This document shows, piece by piece, positions 1,864 to 36,328 of a stretch of 42,789 bases of DNA; positions within the stretch are counted from its first letter, which is position 1; every line of letters begins with the position of its first letter. Both the position numbers and the translations under genes were made by a program. The notes beneath the pieces were generated by a model. That model did no database searches, was not told the DNA's origin, and saw only the letters and a list, made by a program, of their open reading frames with translations. The DNA lies in assembly GCA_009103225.1 (NCBI GenBank), contig RHPI01000385.1, positions 511,810 through 554,598 of the forward strand, in the 5' to 3' direction. The DNA comes from Chlorokybus atmophyticus (taxonomy: Eukaryota > Plantae > Mesostigma and Chlorokybus algae).

Positions 1864-2074
1864 GGGGGGGGGGGGGGGGGGGGGNNNNNNNNNNNNNNNN
1901 NNNNNNNNNNNNNNNNNNNNNNNNNNNNNNNNNNNNNNNNNNNNNNNNNNNNNNNNNNNNNNNNNNNNNNNNNNNNNNNNNNNNNNNNNNNNNNNNNNNN
2001 NNNNNNNNNNNNNNNNNNNNNNNNNNNNNNNNNNNNNNNNNNNNNNNNNNNNNNNNNNNNNNNNNNGGGGGGGG
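1864..2074. other. Poly-G tract interrupted by an assembly gap (182 N, 1885-2066)
   Basis: 21 G before the N-run and 8 G after it. Confidence 0.95.
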
Positions 2075-2084
2075 CGGGGTTGGG

Positions 2085-2091
2085 TATATAA
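2085..2091 (+). promoter_or_regulatory. TATA box (TATATAA) of the Ole e 1/propeller gene
   Basis: Lies about 65 nt upstream of a strong 5'UTR intron donor (CAG|GTAAGC at 2158; acceptor TTGCAG at 2276), which precedes the ATG at 2283. Confidence 0.6.
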
Positions 2092-2282
2092 GCAGCTGTG
2101 ACTGCATTTGCCGCAGCAGTGTACAAACAGCTTGCACATAGGGGCGCGCTTGTGCAGGTAAGCTGAGAGAGTGGCAAGCAGCCAGGCATTCTTTACTGCT
2201 TGCGTGCAACGATTAGCTCAAGCTTAAGTGACGCACGAAAGCAGTGAGCTCCAACATTTGTGTTGCTTTCTTGCAGATCAAG

Positions 2283-5200
2283 ATGAGGCGAGTATTGTGC
2301 GCACTGGTTCTGCTGAGCTGCGCTTTAGCCGCAGAAGCATGCACTGCCACCATCAAGGGAAGTGTCTTCTGCGACAAATGCAATGACGGTAAGCTAGCTT
2401 TTTCAATGTTGCATCACACACAGCACCTGCTCGCTTTGAGTCACTAACCTTCTGTATGTTTATACTGCCAGCAGCATATCTGACCAGTACATTACTGTCT
2501 TTACAGGAGACAAGAACGGAGCAGATTACCCAATAGCAAATGTGCCAGTGAAGCTAACATGCTATGGCAAAAGGGCGGGCCAGTCCAGCTTGGTGCCCTT
2601 CTTTCACGGCGCGACAACCAATGCTGCCGGCGGGTTCACCTTCACCGGGGTTGAGACAGTTGAGAGCATGCAAGCTGCCGGCTTGACATTCAACCACTGC
2701 CTGCTGACCGTTCTCAAGCACAAAGCGAACCCCTGCAACGGCACAAGCACACTCCCCTGCGGCCAAAACCAAAGATTCCAGAACCTCCGCAAGAACCAAG
2801 TGCGCACAACAAGCGATGTATGCTACCTGCCCCGCGCTGCTCCGCCACCCGGCGCGTGCACTAGCACCAACCCAGACAACGGCCCCGCACGTGAGTTCCT
2901 TTGTTGGTTGAAGCGTTGTTACCTGCCTGTTGGTTGAAGCGTTGTTACCTGCCTTGCCTTTTTGAACTCATGAGAAGCAACAAGTGCTGGTGGTTGCGTT
3001 GACACTGACCATCGCTCTCAATCTCGCAGCCTGCGCATCCAGCATATACTTTGTGTCCGGTGATGGCATGTCTGTCAACCGCGTCAACATTGTCCCGCGC
3101 CCCGGCCCCCTTCCCACCGCCGGCATCACTGTCTGGACAAGCACACAAGCCAACTCAGAGATCAGGGGTGTTGCAGTCAATGAAGGTAAAGAAGTTGGGT
3201 GTGACAATGACTTTGTTTCGTGCGCCCTGTGTCATTGCCCACTGGCATGCTCGAGTGCAGTGCTGTTGATGGTTGGAGTAACCAGTCTGGTTCCTTTCGC
3301 AGTGAACGGCGATGTGTATGCTCTCGTGCAACAGACAGTGTACCCATACATGATGACCATCTACAAGATCAATGTTGCCGTGAGTCCTGCTGTGGCTGTG
3401 AGCGTCACCAGCCCCGAGAGTTTCATCAACTACAATGCGTACGGATCCGGATACGGCCTCCAACTTACCATTGAGAACAGTGGTGAGTGGCTTACAATAT
3501 GCAAGTTGCATGGTGCCAGCTTGCGAGCTGAGCTTGTTGCACAACCTAGCGCGCTGTGCTCACGACTCTCTTGCTAATCATGTGTGATGTTTGACAGATC
3601 AAGCCGCTGGCCCCACGCTGATCTACGGCTATCGCTTCAGCCAGGACCCGCATTACGGCTCTTACACCGTGATAAGGAGGGTGGTGTTGGCTACAGAGCA
3701 AACAATGACCATACTCCAGTCCAGCACATACTACGATATCAGCGGCATCAAAGTGGACAGCACAGTCAGCCCTGCACAGATCTACGTCAAGATTGGAAAC
3801 ACTGTCAAGAAAGCCAACCTGCCCGCTATCGGCAGCACACTGTCGCAGAACGACCTCGACAATGGCGTTGTGGCTTCCAATATTGTGGACTACTCCACCT
3901 TCGCAGCTGACTTTGGTACGCATGCTTGCTCTGTTACACTGTCTTCTGGCATTATTCTTCCTAGCTCGCACAATCTGAACGCCCCGCTCATCCTCCTCAA
4001 ACGCTGCAGTTGCAAGGAAGATATACTTCATACCCCTGGCTGCTGCCGGGGCTCAAACCGGCATTGCCGTTGCGGACCTGAGCACCACACCCGCTACAGT
4101 TGTCTCAGCCAACATCTTGGGCAGCAACTTTCCTCTGACTGTCGCTGACCACTTCCCCATCCTGGTTGATGGCGTGTCCAGTAAGTTCCTCACATGCCAA
4201 TAGCGTTTTTCTGTCTGGCCTAGATGGTAGTTGATGCTGACCGCTGGCCTGCCTGCCTGCTTGACAGACCCCAAGCGTCTCTTCTTCGCGGATGTGAGCA
4301 CCTCGCAGTACCGCAGCAATCTGTATGACGCATACAGCACTTCGCTGAGCGGAGCTCAGGCGGTGGGTGTCGTTGACCACATCATCAACTACTCGCCGTT
4401 CGACTTCTTGGATGTTATGGGCGCTGTTGACAACCAGGCGGGTCGCAAACAAGTGACCAAGGTTCCCGCCCTCGCCATCACAACAGTCTGCACAGCCCCG
4501 CTCTCTCTATGTATGTGCCAACTTGCATGTGACATTCTGATTAGTCTTCATTGCACTTTTTGTTCCATGTCAGTGCTCGATGTAGCTCATCCTTTACTGA
4601 ACGCCTTCCATTGCAGATTCGCCCACGGTGTACGTGAGCACGCAATCCCCGGCGGGCGTGTTGCGCTCACAAGCGGGTGCCCCCATGACCACTCTGACAA
4701 CACCGGCCACAACAACACAAACCCGCGCAGGACCATCGGTGTTGAACGCTGAGAAGAAGCAGATTTACTATTTCGGACAGGTCGGCAACACTTGGACTCT
4801 TTATGTGGCACCAACATCAACGGCTACCTCAACCTCCGTCCCTGTCACAACTGGCACGGGCTTTGTTGCTGGCGCAGACATCGATGTGACGGACCCTGAG
4901 AACCCTATCATATTCTACAGCGTGGTTGTTGGCACGACCTCGACAATATACCAGCTGACGGTGTCCACAGGCGCACAAGTGGCACTGTACACCGGCGTAA
5001 AAGAGACAATTCCTTCGCTAATATCTGATCCTGCCCCTCGCTATGGCGGCATCACCGATCCGATGATATGGTTCCTGAGTGTGGATGTCTCCGGCTCATC
5101 TCCAGTGTACTCAATCAAGTATGGTGCTGTCGCCAGCTTGGGCTCCCTGGAGGTGGCTTACACGGAGGAGGACCCCAGCCTGATTCTGTCATCCATTGCG

Positions 5201-5731
5201 ATGGACAGCCAAGTCACTGGCGTGGGCATATACGTGCTGAAGACGGCTTCCAGTGCTCCAACCACACCGCTCGTCATGCGTCTGCGCCTTGCGGGATTCA
5301 TGGAGGTGTTCAACTACAACGTTGTCCAAGCAGGCTTCACCACCTCCACCACAGCAACATCCATCGCTGTGGATGAACGCTCAGGTAAGAGCTTGTTGAC
5401 ACTTAATTGCTCTGTTGCGTGCACAAGCAAGTGTGGGATTGCTGAAGCTGACTCGTGCATCCGTTGTGCAGTGCCAAAGAAGGTGTACATCTCTGATACC
5501 AGCGCCGTCTACGTTGCGAACATCGTGGAGGCCAACTTCTCACCCAGGAGCAAGTTCACATTTGCAACTGCTCTGCAGGCACCTGCTGGTGCTGGCTCTT
5601 TCACACAAATGTCCATTGGCCAAGGTATGTGAAGCCAAGTTGCCTGCATATTGTGTGGAGTGTTGCAAGCGCAGCATGGTATGTTGGTGTGCCAAAACCA
5701 ATCCGTTTGGTGTCTCGCAGAGCTGAAGTAA
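2283..5731 (+). CDS. Secreted protein of about 806 aa: signal peptide, Pollen Ole e 1-like domain, then about 12 YWTD/NHL-like beta-propeller repeats
   Basis: 10 coding exons: 2283-2388, 2507-2890, 3030-3185, 3303-3482, 3598-3915, 4010-4180, 4268-4441, 4617-5384, 5472-5624, 5721-5731. All introns are GT-AG and the join is one open frame of 2421 nt. N-terminus MRRVLCALVLLSCALAAEA is signal-peptide-like. IKGSVFCDKCNDGDKNGADYPIANVPVKLTC...TTNAAGGF matches the Ole e 1 pattern (G-x-V-x-C-D-x-C...C...T-x-x-x-G-x-F). The propeller is inferred from recurring (I/V)AVD...(K/R)(I/V)Y(F/V/I)(S/T)D-like motifs. Confidence 0.85.
2902..2953. repeat. 26-bp perfect tandem duplication inside an intron
   Basis: TGTTGGTTGAAGCGTTGTTACCTGCC x2. 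Confidence 0.95.
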
Positions 5732-6971
5732 ACACCATCCGCTTCAAGTTACACAGTGCAGCATGCACAGTACTGCAGTGCACCCAACCTGGAAGGGTAC
5801 ACATTGAATAGCGACCCTCTGCCCCTTCAATAAGCGACCGGCAAACGCAGCACCAGTCTACTGTATGTACCTTTTTGCGGCACAGACTGCGCAACGTTTG
5901 TCCCTGGCGAAAGTTCATGCCATTCCTGTGCTGAACTGTCAATAAAGCGTGCCACTGCGCGCCCCGTACATAGTTTCCACTTAACAGCTGGTGGCTATTT
6001 TGATCATAAGGCCCAAGTATACATATACTTCCCCTGAAGTACATAGCCAGCCATATGTAGTATTTGTTACAGTTGTGTGAATAGTGCGTAGCTGTACACG
6101 CACGCGACTCATCAGTGCGTTTTTGAACCAATAATGCAATATCCATTGCCTGTGTGCAGCTTGGAGTGGAAATGCTGGACAAACAACGTGTTGGCATAAG
6201 ATGCATATACATAGGCATGCTGCAGGTGACTGCAGGTGTATGCATGCTTGCATGGCTAAAGGGGTGTTGGCAGTAGTGTAGGTAGTGAATTGGATAAGGT
6301 GAAGTAGGCGGTGGCGAAGTATGTGAAAGTGTTGATTGCTCGTTGTGAACATTGGCTGGTTGTGATTGTCATTATGCATGAGCATATCCCTCGCGCATTG
6401 TCTGTACACCTCGCAGTGTACCAAAGAATGGCGAGGGGATTGCCTGCATGCAACGCATGCCACACATGCGTACTTGAAGTAATTCGACGAACAGGTTGAG
6501 AGAAAGTCTTTCGCAGAAGTCGTAAAGTAAGTAAACAACAAAAGACACACGACAAGCAGAAGCACACTCAGCAGGCACAATGCATGCGAGATCACTTGGG
6601 GCTATTACCTTTTGGCAATATATGTATATGCACAATCAACAGAGCATAGATTGAGTGAGAGTTGCATCATCCCATGGTGCGCAGTGAGACTAAAGAAGGC
6701 ATGAACGAGGCAGGTTGTTCATCAAGGTCACTTGATGTTGGCTGCAGTGACGGTCTTGGTACCACATGCAGGTGTAAATGCTGTGGTAGGCCGACCATCA
6801 GACTATTCTGGTTAGACGAGATTCACGGCACAGATTGGTCAAATGAATGAAGCAGATAACCTGCATACCAGGAACAAAACTGGTGGCCAGATCAATGAAT
6901 GGTGAAGTAGAGCCATGCAGCGCCAGCTGACAGAGCATGGCCCTAGGTTTCTAACATTGTAGATGGTCAGA

Positions 6972-9926
<2,955 letters not shown>

Positions 9927-22410: not shown

Positions 22411-24808
<2,398 letters not shown>

Positions 24809-32718: not shown

Positions 32719-35700
32719 ATGGTGAGTCAGTCAGTTTACTGAACAGTCGCCGTCGTTGAGTTTAGCAGTGTGGAATTGATTGTAATGACGACACTGGCGA
32801 GTCAGCGCCTACGTGACTGGACTCACAACGATTTGTTACCCTGAAGTCTTGTCTGTTTTATCTTCTCCGTCATCTGTAACTGGTTGTTTGAAACCCTCGG
32901 TCATGCCCTCGCAGTCTCAAAACCTTCTGCTCGCAATACTTGTTGTTGGCTCCATTTTGTGGTATTCGTTTGTATGTATGGCACGGTGGGTCCGTTGGGT
33001 GTCATGTTAGGTCAAGGGTAGTTTACGGTTCTAGTTGGAGGCTTAGTGTCCAGTCAGTTTGCACTGGGCGTTCGTTGAATTTCTACAGCATGGCAGACGT
33101 CCAGTTTGCTTGAAACGGTTGTACTGCTGTGACATGGTCAGCTACCTATTAGGTGACACCTGATTTCAAGTGGCACTTTGCATTCACTTGAACCAAAGTA
33201 TTCACTTTGTGTGCGGGCTTGTCGTCAGACCATATCAGGGCATCACGTGGGACATGACCCCAAATTTTACCATGTGTCTGCAGACGGACGCCAAGGCTAC
33301 TGCAAATGGCACGACTCCGGGCTCAAAGACGAACACAAAGGAGGCTGGTTCAGAGCAGGCAGCTTCAGAGATTGCGAAGGCTTCAATCGAGGATGTGCTC
33401 TCTCGGCTTGGAGTGACTGATAAGGGTCTGAGCTCAGCACAAGTTGAGGAGCGTCTCGCCCGGTTTGGTCCGAATGCACTGGAAGAGAAGTCCGTTCACC
33501 CCGTTATTCAGTACTTGTTGTTCCTCTGGAACCCTATGTCCTGGACCATGGAGATTGCAGCGCTGTTGGCTATCATTCTTGGTGATTGGCTCGATGCTGT
33601 TCTTGTTGCATCTCTTCTTCTGATCAATGCAACCATTGGCTACTGGGAGGAGCACACCAGTGGCGAGGCGATTGCTGCTCTGAAGGCGGGTCTGGCACCA
33701 AACTCGCGCGCGCTACGAAACGGGGAATGGGTGTCGGTTCCAGCCAAGGATCTTGTGCCCGGAGACATCATCAAGATGAGGCTTGGCGATGTTATCCCTG
33801 CAGACTCCAAGTTGTTGGAATTTCATGGCGTGTGTAAGGTGGACCAAGCTTCCTTGACAGGAGAGAGCTTACCCGTCACCAAGTATCCCAGCAACACAGT
33901 CTTTGCAGGAGCAGTTCTGAAGCAGGGTGAGGTTGAGGCCGTCGTTTATGCTACTGGTGTCAACACTTTCTTTGGCAAGGCAGCAGATCTGGTGCAGTCT
34001 ACAGTGGTGCGCGGGCATTTTCAAACGGTGCTTACCAACATTGGTTACTTCTGCATCATCTTCATCGTCATCTGGGTGTTTGTCATCCTGATGGTGCAGT
34101 TTGTCGGCCGCAACAAGCTCTGCAATGGGCTTGGGTGGGGAGGCTCTGCTACAAAGAACTGCTACGCTTTGACAAATTCACTCGTGCTAATCGTTGGAGG
34201 CATTCCCATCGCCATGCCTACTGTGATGTCCGTGACCATGGCCGTCGGTGCTGGTCAGCTCGCCAAGCATGAGGCAATTGTTGCTCGGTTGACAGCTGTG
34301 GAGGAGATGGCTGGCATGGACCTCCTGTGCTCAGACAAGACGGGTACCCTGACGCTGAACAAGCTGACTGTGAAGGATCCTGAGTGCTTCGAAGGTGCCA
34401 CTGGACGGGAGGTCATCCTGATGGCAGCTTTGGCAGCTGGACGTGTGGACCCTGATGCAATTGATGGCGCCATCTTGGGTGTCTGTGAAGACAAGGACAA
34501 GTTCGACAACTTTGAGCTGCTGAAGTTTGAGCCATTTGACCCTGTCGGCAAGCGCGTCATTGGCATCTACAAAGACAAGACCACTGGCCAGTCCTTTGCC
34601 GCTTGCAAGGGTGCACCACAGATTGCTCTTGGCATGGCCCACAACAAGGGTGCGCTTGCTGCAGAGGTTGAAGCAAGGATTAACAACCTTGCGTCTCGTG
34701 GCTATCGAACTCTTGGAGTTTGCAAAGCTGAGGATGAGCCTAACTTTGAGCATTGGAGGTTCATTGGCCTCATTCCACTGTTTGATCCACCGCGGCATGA
34801 CACTGCAGAGACTGTGGAGAAAGCTCAGCAACTCGGCATTGGTGTCAAGATGATTACTGGTGATCAGGCGGCTATTGCCAAGGAGACATGCCGACAACTG
34901 AAGATGGGCGACGACATCCAGAGCCCGGATGAACTTTTGGAGTACGACGATGGTGATGCGGCCGTGAAGCTGCGTATTGGCAAGGCTGTTGAGCTGGCAG
35001 ATGGCTTCGCTGGAGTGTACCCTGAGCACAAGTACAAGATTGTGGAGATCTTGCAGAAGCGGGGTCACTTTGTTGGCATGACTGGCGATGGTGTCAACGA
35101 CGCCCCTGCACTTAAGAAAGCGGACATTGGCATTGCTGTGGCGGATGCAACGGACGCGGCGCGCGCAGCAGCTGACATTGTGCTGATGTCGCCTGGTCTT
35201 GGTGTCATCATTCATGCCATCATTGGTGCCAGAAAGATCTTCCAGCGCATGCGGAACTATGCGATGTACAGTGTCAGCACCACCATCCGTAACGTCACCA
35301 CGTTTGCCATTCTTACCATTGCTTGGGACTGGTATTTTCCCACATTCATGATGGCCTTGATTGCTATCTTGAATGACGGCACGATCCTCACTGTCTCCAC
35401 TGATCGCGTGCTGCCTTCCGACCTTCCGGATCACTGGCATCTGGACAGGATCTTTTTGCTGTCGGTTGTTCTGGGTGGGTACTTGGTGATCTCCACTCTG
35501 TTGCTGTTCGCTTTTGCAAAGAACACGACGTGGCCGTCAGATTGGTTTGGCTTGCGAGATATCAAGAACTCTCCAACTGGGCCCCAAGTGGGTGAGTCTC
35601 AGGAATATGTGCATCGCCTCGGCCTGGACTATCTTCGTTCCATTGTCTACCTCAACATCTCCATATCTGGCCAGCTTATTATCTTCTCCACTCGCTCCAC

Positions 35701-36328
35701 CAAATTCTGGTTCTCCTCGCGGCCTTCGTACCCGCTGATGGGGGCCTTTGTGATTGCCCAAATTGTGAGCACATTCATCGCAGTTTATGGGTTTGGCGGC
35801 TATCCCAACGACGGGTTTACAGATTTCCGGGGCTGCGGCTGGGGTTGGGCACTGTTCGTGTGGATCTGGTCCTTCCTCTGGTTCCTGCCTCTGGACTTCT
35901 TCAAGCTTGCGGTGCAGGGCTTCTACCACCGTTTGGATAAGAAGCGTTCTCTCGTGGCGCGAGAGAACGTGCCGGAGACGCAGCAGGGGCATCCCGTCTA
36001 CGGCAAGATGGAGACATTCCAGGCTGGCTGGACAGTTACGGGCAAGACCATTCTGACCGTGCCGGATGCGCAGACAGTGCACTCCCTTGGCAACTCGGAC
36101 TCGCGAACGGTTACGTCCCTCAATGAGATCACATACGACGGGGCGGGCGCGACTGCTACCGGCGGTGGCCGCCGTCTGAAGGATGTCACGTGGCCCAAGT
36201 TGGAGACGACAGAGCAGAAACCTCGTGGCCTCAAGTCCATCTTCAACGAGACACCAACGGACGGGCCTGCATCGGCGGGGCCGCCAGACCAGGGCATTGA
36301 GATCACTCCTCAGGCCGGAACTAAGTAG
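32719..36328 (+). CDS. PMA: P3A-type plasma-membrane H+-ATPase (about 1015 aa)
   Basis: Exon 1 contributes only ATG (32719-32721, followed by GTGAGT); intron to TCTGCAG at 33283; a single exon 33284-36328. Motifs TGES, GGIPIAMPTV, CSDKTGTLT (phospho-Asp), KGAP, DPPRHD, MITGD, TGDGVNDAPALKKADIG, and ILNDGT (proton-acceptor Asp of TM6). Confidence 0.97.

Follow-up and report, generated by a model that had tools for sequence, protein, structure and literature searches.

Phase-1 introns at the borders of a highly diverged repeat in a predicted secreted protein of the streptophyte alga Chlorokybus atmophyticus

Can the introns of a gene keep a record of how a repeated protein was assembled, once the repeats themselves have diverged almost beyond recognition? 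The question is raised by a gene of Chlorokybus atmophyticus, located in a stretch of 42,789 nucleotides (nt) read on the forward strand of contig RHPI01000385.1 (assembly GCA_009103225.1, positions 511,810 to 554,598); this whole stretch is hereafter the window, and its own numbering is used throughout. The gene runs on the plus strand from an ATG at 2283 to a stop codon at 5729-5731. An earlier note, made from the letters of the DNA, had described it as a propeller built from exon modules, with all nine coding introns in phase 1 and eight of them at the same point of a repeat. The evidence presented here supports a repeat that is real although very diverged, with units some 50 residues long and borders that coincide with those of symmetric 1-1 exons. 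The favoured reading is that of a secreted protein of about 806 residues whose twelve units probably originated when a single exon was copied in tandem inside the gene, some of the introns being lost afterwards.

The ten exons of the gene model (Table 1), once joined, form an open reading frame (ORF) of 806 codons, the coding sequence amounting to 2421 nt in total with zero internal stops. In a three-frame translation, the plus strand at 2000-6200 appears as a chain of open segments that can be joined only by the GT..AG junctions of the earlier note, or by close variants of them. All nine coding introns have GT..AG ends and fall after the first base of a codon, hence in phase 1, and the internal exons measure 384, 156, 180, 318, 171, 174, 768 and 153 nt, each a multiple of 3; both statements had been made beforehand, the sizes to the nucleotide, and the phases are confirmed by the translation of the ten-exon model together with the coding and splice scores described below.

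Uniformity of phase is not a habit of the locus. Directly downstream, on the minus strand, lies an acetoacetyl-CoA-thiolase-like gene (6975-9232) in which ten introns were fixed by the consecutive tiling of the Pfam profiles Thiolase_N and Thiolase_C; these junctions join 394 codons without a stop, and the phases of the ten introns are 1, 0, 1, 0, 2, 0, 0, 0, 0 and 0, i.e. phase 0 seven times, phase 1 twice and phase 2 once. These mixed phases, which had been asserted for the neighbouring genes at the outset, indicate that uniform phase 1 is specific to the repeat gene. Given a phase-1 share of about 0.3, nine phase-1 introns out of nine would be met by chance with a probability of about 2e-5.

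The second component of the finding is the register between introns and repeat. Exons 3-9 encode 633 residues, in which the aromatic motif [ILVM][YFW][ILVFAYG] occurs 14 times, and in every one of these seven exons a copy is found at residues 4-8, which agrees with the proposal that the introns precede an aromatic strand. Five further copies are internal, one at residue 61 of exon 5 and four at residues 49, 98, 150 and 204 of exon 8, where the first copy stands at residue 4; the spacing is of 45-54 residues. Counted by these copies, exons 3-9 contain 1, 1, 2, 1, 1, 5 and 1 units, summing to 12, the same count as originally put forward. On the other side of the introns, the exon ends preceding introns 3-9 carry a hydrophobic-x-hydrophobic-D/N/E/G strand (a strict form of the pattern in five of the seven, a looser one in the remaining two), and the peptides that had been quoted at these points are all present. 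Each unit reads from a hydrophobic-aromatic-hydrophobic strand at its start to a hydrophobic-x-hydrophobic-Asp/Asn/Glu strand at its end.

Are the units homologous to one another? When a profile is built from the seven exon starts only, it matches again in that part of exon 8 on which it was not trained, beyond the level of 2000 shuffles: its third and fourth best matches there have P <= 0.0005, the sum of the top four was reached in 0 of the 2000 shuffles, and the matches fall on the first or the second strand of units 8-11. In global alignments of unit against unit, the 66 pairs average a Z of 0.82, compared with 0.07 for control pieces of exon 2. Identity between units is in the order of 20%, and DNA similarity is absent among the exons as well as among the introns of the gene, from which it follows that the duplications must be old. 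For homology among the repeat exons the signal is weak, though above the controls. An alignment of all twelve units with MAFFT was of poor quality and was set aside.

A scheme for the origin of the gene can be drawn as follows. An ancestral exon of 3n nt, corresponding to one unit and flanked on both sides by phase-1 introns, would have been copied in tandem by unequal recombination, and the copies would then have diverged past any DNA similarity, down to the present level of protein identity. Five of the inter-unit introns would have been lost later, one of them within exon 5 and four adjacent ones within exon 8, the latter block being consistent with a single cDNA-mediated loss. Most likely, the units are blades, each shifted by a strand, and together they form one or two beta-propellers of the YWTD/TolB-like type (2 x 6); a binding or scaffold role at the cell surface or in the wall would fit a twelve-unit protein of this sort. 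The uniform phase-1 introns at the unit borders are most likely a fossil of the growth of the array.

The main rival to tandem duplication is parallel intron gain, whereby an intron-poor gene of twelve units would have received independent insertions at the same loop, at a recurring phase-1 proto-splice site; it also implies that the five intron-less borders never had introns. In keeping with it, seven of nine exons end in G and seven of nine following exons start with a purine, loosely like the proto-splice site MAG/R, the introns have no sequence similarity to each other, and it is argued in the review by Patthy (PMC8001218) that phase 1 is favoured by proto-splice sites in Gly-rich linkers and near the cleavage point of signal peptides. 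However, parallel gain requires eight independent insertions that all agree in residue register and in phase, the codons interrupted by the introns (P, V, D, V, N, D, V and E) include no conserved Gly, and phase 0 dominates among the ordinary introns of the neighbouring thiolase gene. I regard it as improbable.

A number of observations weigh against the growth of the array from a single exon, and they concern in turn the repeat, the junctions and the protein. As to the repeat, the chance of finding the aromatic motif at a random position is 0.108, which for seven exons out of seven gives a nominal value of about 2e-7, an optimistic figure in that the motif of this register test was chosen after inspection of the data. 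The units are of unequal length (46-59 residues), and unit 7, rich in Thr, Pro and Ala and partly of low complexity, is the weakest among them. When the exons were compared with the window and among themselves by tblastn and blastp, neither significant exon pairs nor a paralogue within the window came to light, and a hidden Markov model (HMM) built with MAFFT from the five single-unit exons missed the units inside exons 5 and 8. Alignment of the repeats, which the earlier note had proposed as a check, gives the weak signal of the global Z values, and BLAST and a simple HMM detect nothing.

As to the junctions, the gene model is an ab initio prediction; the proposed junction of intron 3 ranks second in a near-tie (47.3 vs 47.6 for a phase-0 pair), and the donor of intron 7 is ambiguous between 4442 and 4511. 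The ranking covers all frame-preserving GT-AG pairs for introns 1-8, scored by a splice matrix of the thiolase introns plus a codon score, the codon log-odds having been trained on other genes of the window, namely a P-type ATPase ORF and the thiolase exons. Taken alone, the splice matrix (10 thiolase introns) proved too weak for ranking and removed coding sequence, and it was replaced by the combined splice and coding score. The junctions proposed in the earlier note come first for introns 1, 2, 5, 6 and 8. For intron 4 the proposed pair is third, behind the donors 3483 or 3480 joined to the acceptor 3696, both of which also give phase 1.

The case of intron 7 deserves a closer look. Here the donor 4511 (GTATGT) exceeds 4442 (GTCGCA), the donor initially chosen, by 5.8 bits, and its use would lengthen the protein by 23 residues; the acceptor 4616 is the sole usable one, because the downstream frame opens only at 4601, and every donor pairing with it yields phase 1. 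The intron more likely starts at 4511 than at 4442, so that the original junction loses its place while the phase is kept. The thiolase introns (69-182 nt) begin twice with GTCGGT and once with GTGCAG, which shows that donor sites of this genome are loose after GT, and the two GTCGGT donors leave room for a GTC donor in intron 7. Intron 9, in turn, may not need to be spliced at all: if unspliced, the coding sequence ends two codons later, at a TGA in 5630-5632, yet a strong donor is nevertheless found at the usual point of the repeat.

Might then some of the junctions be wrong, and the uniform phase and register fail with them? That all of them are ab initio, that those of introns 3, 4 and 7 are not top-ranked, and that intron 9 is unscored and possibly unspliced would speak for an artefact of the gene model. 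On the other hand, the predicted frame of exons 2-9 has a codon score between +0.26 and +0.49 per codon whereas their other frames score negatively, the introns have a negative codon score in 26 of 27 intron-frame combinations (the exception, +0.03, being one frame of intron 5), and the minus-strand ORFs overlapping the gene have negative coding scores as well. On both sides of every intron, the frame is dictated by long open stretches that score positively as coding sequence, and most of the near-best alternative junctions, including all donors usable for intron 7, keep phase 1. An artefact on this scale is very unlikely.

As to the protein, the product is predicted to be secreted and to consist of a signal peptide (called by eye from its n, h and c regions), a Cys-rich Ole e 1-like domain and twelve Cys-free, all-beta units rich in Val, Ser, Thr and Ala. 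Exon 2 reaches 22.1 bits against the Pfam profile Pollen_Ole_e_1 (PF01190), for which the cut-off is 23, over positions 20-93 of 99; the missing start of the profile (positions 1-19) would lie in exon 1, and a sequence search of the PDB with exon 2 returned no match. This sub-threshold hit is the sole one in Pfam and NCBIfam scans of every exon. In particular, no repeat exon matched a propeller family at E <= 10 in either collection, and exon 8 found one match only, an unrelated one, in a sequence search of the PDB. When strands one and two of the twelve units were made into a profile, its best PDB match was to a designed six-bladed propeller, with an E of 0.13 that is not significant.

Structure prediction weighs on both sides: no usable fold came out of it, and the strand-only content of both models counts in favour of the proposed reading. 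For exon 8 alone, from the single sequence, AlphaFold gave a predicted local distance difference test (pLDDT) score of 32.5, with strands only and no usable fold, and for the ORF 4619-5623 (units 7-12, intron 8 with its 87 nt being read as coding), aided by a thin alignment of the other exons, a score of 38.2, again with strands only, no closed ring and no usable fold; a Chou-Fasman count of strands was too crude to be of use. An exhaustive HMMER search of 1.84 billion representative proteins, with exon 8 as the query, yielded three matches to Cys-rich and cadherin-like tandem-repeat proteins, which were judged to be unrelated. No self match was among them, so that the proteins of the Chlorokybus genome are evidently absent from the library searched; with exon 8 as a HMMER query, the repeat family would seem to have no detectable relative outside Chlorokybus.

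What speaks for a propeller is of a different kind. Units of about 50 residues with some four strand-like segments, in which a hydrophobic-x-hydrophobic-Asp strand is followed by a hydrophobic-aromatic-hydrophobic one, are typical of YWTD/NHL-type blades, in which repeat and structural blade are out of step by a single strand. By protein language model, the neighbours of exon 8 among named clusters are DUF4784, DUF4394, Ldl_recept_b, DUF5050 and XusB (scores 0.86-0.91), which are beta-propeller families, and nine of the ten best neighbours share a family or a clan; the recognition value is 1660, below the level considered reliable, and counts on the negative side. A beta-propeller fold is plausible but unproven, and on balance rather likely.

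A real repeat with another fold, such as a beta-solenoid or a string of small beta-sandwiches in a cell-wall glycoprotein, would account for the lack of a significant match to any propeller family or structure and for the open AlphaFold models, and the Thr/Pro/Ala-rich stretch of unit 7 resembles a glycosylated linker. Against it stand the length, strand number and motif order of the units, the predominance of propeller families among the closest language-model clusters and, non-significant as it is, the designed propeller at the head of the PDB matches; such a fold is somewhat unlikely. The idea of a propeller built from exon modules thus holds for the phase-1 modules at the repeat borders, whereas the fold itself is not established by any family or structure match.

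Exon shuffling was the interpretation suggested by the earlier note, in which symmetric exons were invoked as the hallmark of the process. Understood in the sense of Patthy, it would mean that intronic recombination carried the Ole e 1 part and the blade exons from gene to gene as 1-1 modules. This reading draws on the predicted secretion of the protein, on a phase-1 intron lying near the signal peptide, and on the fact that intron 2, also in phase 1, coincides with the border between the Ole e 1 and linker part and the repeat array. The hallmark appears overstated, though: intron 1 cuts the Ole e 1-like domain, leaving profile positions 1-19 in exon 1, the repeat exons would be parts of a fold and not autonomous domains, and no unrelated gene with these modules was found either by the HMMER search with exon 8 or within the window. 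Shuffling is quite improbable. As for a variable blade number brought about by exon skipping, also envisaged earlier, it is without support and follows only from the 3n arithmetic of the exons; in a closed propeller, the loss of a blade should be disruptive.

Table 1. Features of the repeat gene and of its upstream flank, in window coordinates
Feature	Position	Strand	Basis
TATA-like box, TATATAA	2085..2091	+	read from the sequence; putative promoter role
Putative 5' untranslated region (UTR) intron, donor cag/GTAAGC, acceptor TTTCTTGCAG; ends 6 nt before the ATG	2158..2276	+	sequence reading, predicted
Exon 1, 106 nt: start codon, signal peptide (...AAEA), and of the Ole e 1-like domain the first strand with a Cys	2283..2388	+	translation
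Intron 1, phase 1, 118 nt, GTAAGC...TTTACAG	2389..2506	+	rank 1 of 80 frame-preserving candidates
Exon 2, 384 nt: remainder of the Ole e 1-like domain and Cys/Pro-rich linker	2507..2890	+	Pfam near-threshold; coding log-odds +0.26/codon
Intron 2, phase 1, 139 nt	2891..3029	+	rank 1 of 65
Exon 3, 156 nt, unit 1	3030..3185	+	translation, coding score, motif
Intron 3, phase 1, 117 nt, open in frame	3186..3302	+	rank 2; coding score negative in all frames
Exon 4, 180 nt, unit 2	3303..3482	+	translation, coding score, motif
Intron 4, phase 1, 115 nt	3483..3597	+	rank 3
Exon 5, 318 nt, units 3 and 4, which meet near 3773/3774	3598..3915	+	aromatic motif at residues 8, 61
Intron 5, phase 1, 94 nt	3916..4009	+	rank 1 of 28
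Exon 6, 171 nt, unit 5	4010..4180	+	translation, coding score, motif
Intron 6, phase 1, 87 nt	4181..4267	+	rank 1 of 34
Exon 7, 174 nt, unit 6	4268..4441	+	to 4510 if donor 4511 is used
Intron 7, phase 1, donor 4442 (GTCGCA) or better-scoring 4511 (GTATGT)	4442..4616	+	rank 2 for 4442
Exon 8, 768 nt, units 7-11, borders near 4756/4757, 4903/4904, 5059/5060, 5221/5222	4617..5384	+	motif, profile recurrence
Intron 8, phase 1, 87 nt, open in frame	5385..5471	+	rank 1 of 520
Exon 9, 153 nt, unit 12	5472..5624	+	translation, coding score, motif
Intron 9, phase 1 if spliced, GTATGT...TCTCGCAG	5625..5720	+	outside the junction scoring
Exon 10, 11 nt: final three residues, beginning with the one whose codon intron 9 interrupts, and TAA	5721..5731	+	translation

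Some features of the non-coding parts are worth recording on their own account. Upstream of the gene, an assembly gap of 182 N (1885-2066) ends 18 nt before the TATATAA box, so that upstream regulatory sequence is missing. Intron 2 contains a perfect tandem duplication of a 26-nt unit at 2902-2953, and 2985-3010 is a further copy with 65% identity. Both intron 3 (117 nt) and intron 8 (87 nt) have a 3n length and are stop-free in frame, a frame-2 ORF at 4601-5629 reading through the latter; their retention would add 39 and 29 residues, respectively, with five Cys in each, as opposed to the Cys-free repeat region, and their coding scores are negative. The stretch 4442-4510, between the two candidate donors of intron 7, comprises 23 codons at +0.15 per codon and lies exactly between units 6 and 7, just where one would look for a linker if the array consisted of two halves of six units.

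Elsewhere in the window, the P-type ATPase ORF used for training occupies 33170-36325 on the plus strand; its 1052 codons are uninterrupted (E1-E2_ATPase, 152 bits), and it is unusually intron-free in comparison with its intron-dense neighbours. A piece of ORF at 22698-23174, also on the plus strand, matches positions 1-52 of the Pfam profile Pkinase (E = 2e-4), the start of the kinase domain, and probably represents the exon with which that domain begins in a kinase gene rich in introns.

What would the locus teach, if the reading is right? For old, diverged repeat folds, growth from single units is usually deduced from structure alone, and the intron positions described here offer a second, independent record; they also date the growth of the array to a time at which the unit already carried introns. 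A bolder possibility, which I consider unlikely, is that Chlorokybus possesses a lineage-specific family of secreted proteins combining Ole e 1 and propeller parts, put together from class 1-1 exon modules. If this were true, the modular building of extracellular proteins from phase-1 exons, held to be an animal hallmark, would have arisen independently in an early-diverging streptophyte alga, and the intron positions would constitute a blade-by-blade record of the amplification of a fully diverged double propeller.

In the review by Patthy (PMC8001218), class 1-1 modules of secreted proteins are treated as essentially restricted to Metazoa. As with those modules, the Chlorokybus gene is predicted to encode a secreted protein, its signal peptide is closely followed by an intron in phase 1, and it is made of symmetric 1-1 exons throughout; unlike them, its modules are not autonomous domains. 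The resemblance in phase and secreted context is a superficial one.

Another parallel concerns the amplification of beta-propellers. Pereira and Lupas (PMC9218822) describe their growth from single blades and, in DPPY of Bombyx, the gain of a blade by duplication of one exon. In both instances the array would have grown by copying a blade-sized unit, with the exon as the unit copied; in Chlorokybus, however, the propeller itself is inferred, and the amplification would be ancient (about 20% identity) and recorded in the positions of the introns, not in sequence identity. As far as the type of blade is concerned, the gene resembles those for YWTD (LDL-receptor class B, PF00058) and the related six-bladed TolB-like proteins in its repeat of about 45-55 residues, with an Asp-ended strand, a short loop and an aromatic strand, and in its presumed extracellular location, and PF00058-bearing clusters are among the nearest language-model neighbours of exon 8; unlike PF00058 proteins, it has no significant profile match, no YWTD consensus and no flanking EGF modules.

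That such an architecture is unexpected in an alga, as had been supposed, turns out to be overstated. In the brown alga Ectocarpus, the ROCO genes with leucine-rich repeats (LRR), built of 72-nt exons, and the NB-ARC-TPR genes have one repeat per exon (PMC3341825), and in Tetrahymena the LRR genes show the same arrangement on a massive scale, with exons of 90 bp and more than 96% of the introns in phase 2 (PMC6564038). The Chlorokybus gene shares with both a non-animal host, exons of 3n length containing one structural repeat each, and introns at the same point of the repeat, and with the LRR genes of Tetrahymena the confinement of introns to one phase. It differs in its phase, which is 1, in having an all-beta repeat of about 50 residues and unequal exons (153-180 nt), in the age of its copies, which have no DNA similarity and hardly any protein similarity left, and in five borders that are intron-less.

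To sum up, the gene is most likely an old and tidy case of the one-repeat-per-exon genes that have grown by exon duplication, a mechanism already known and involving no new principle; to the few non-animal cases it adds one from a streptophyte alga, in phase 1 and in a protein that is probably secreted.

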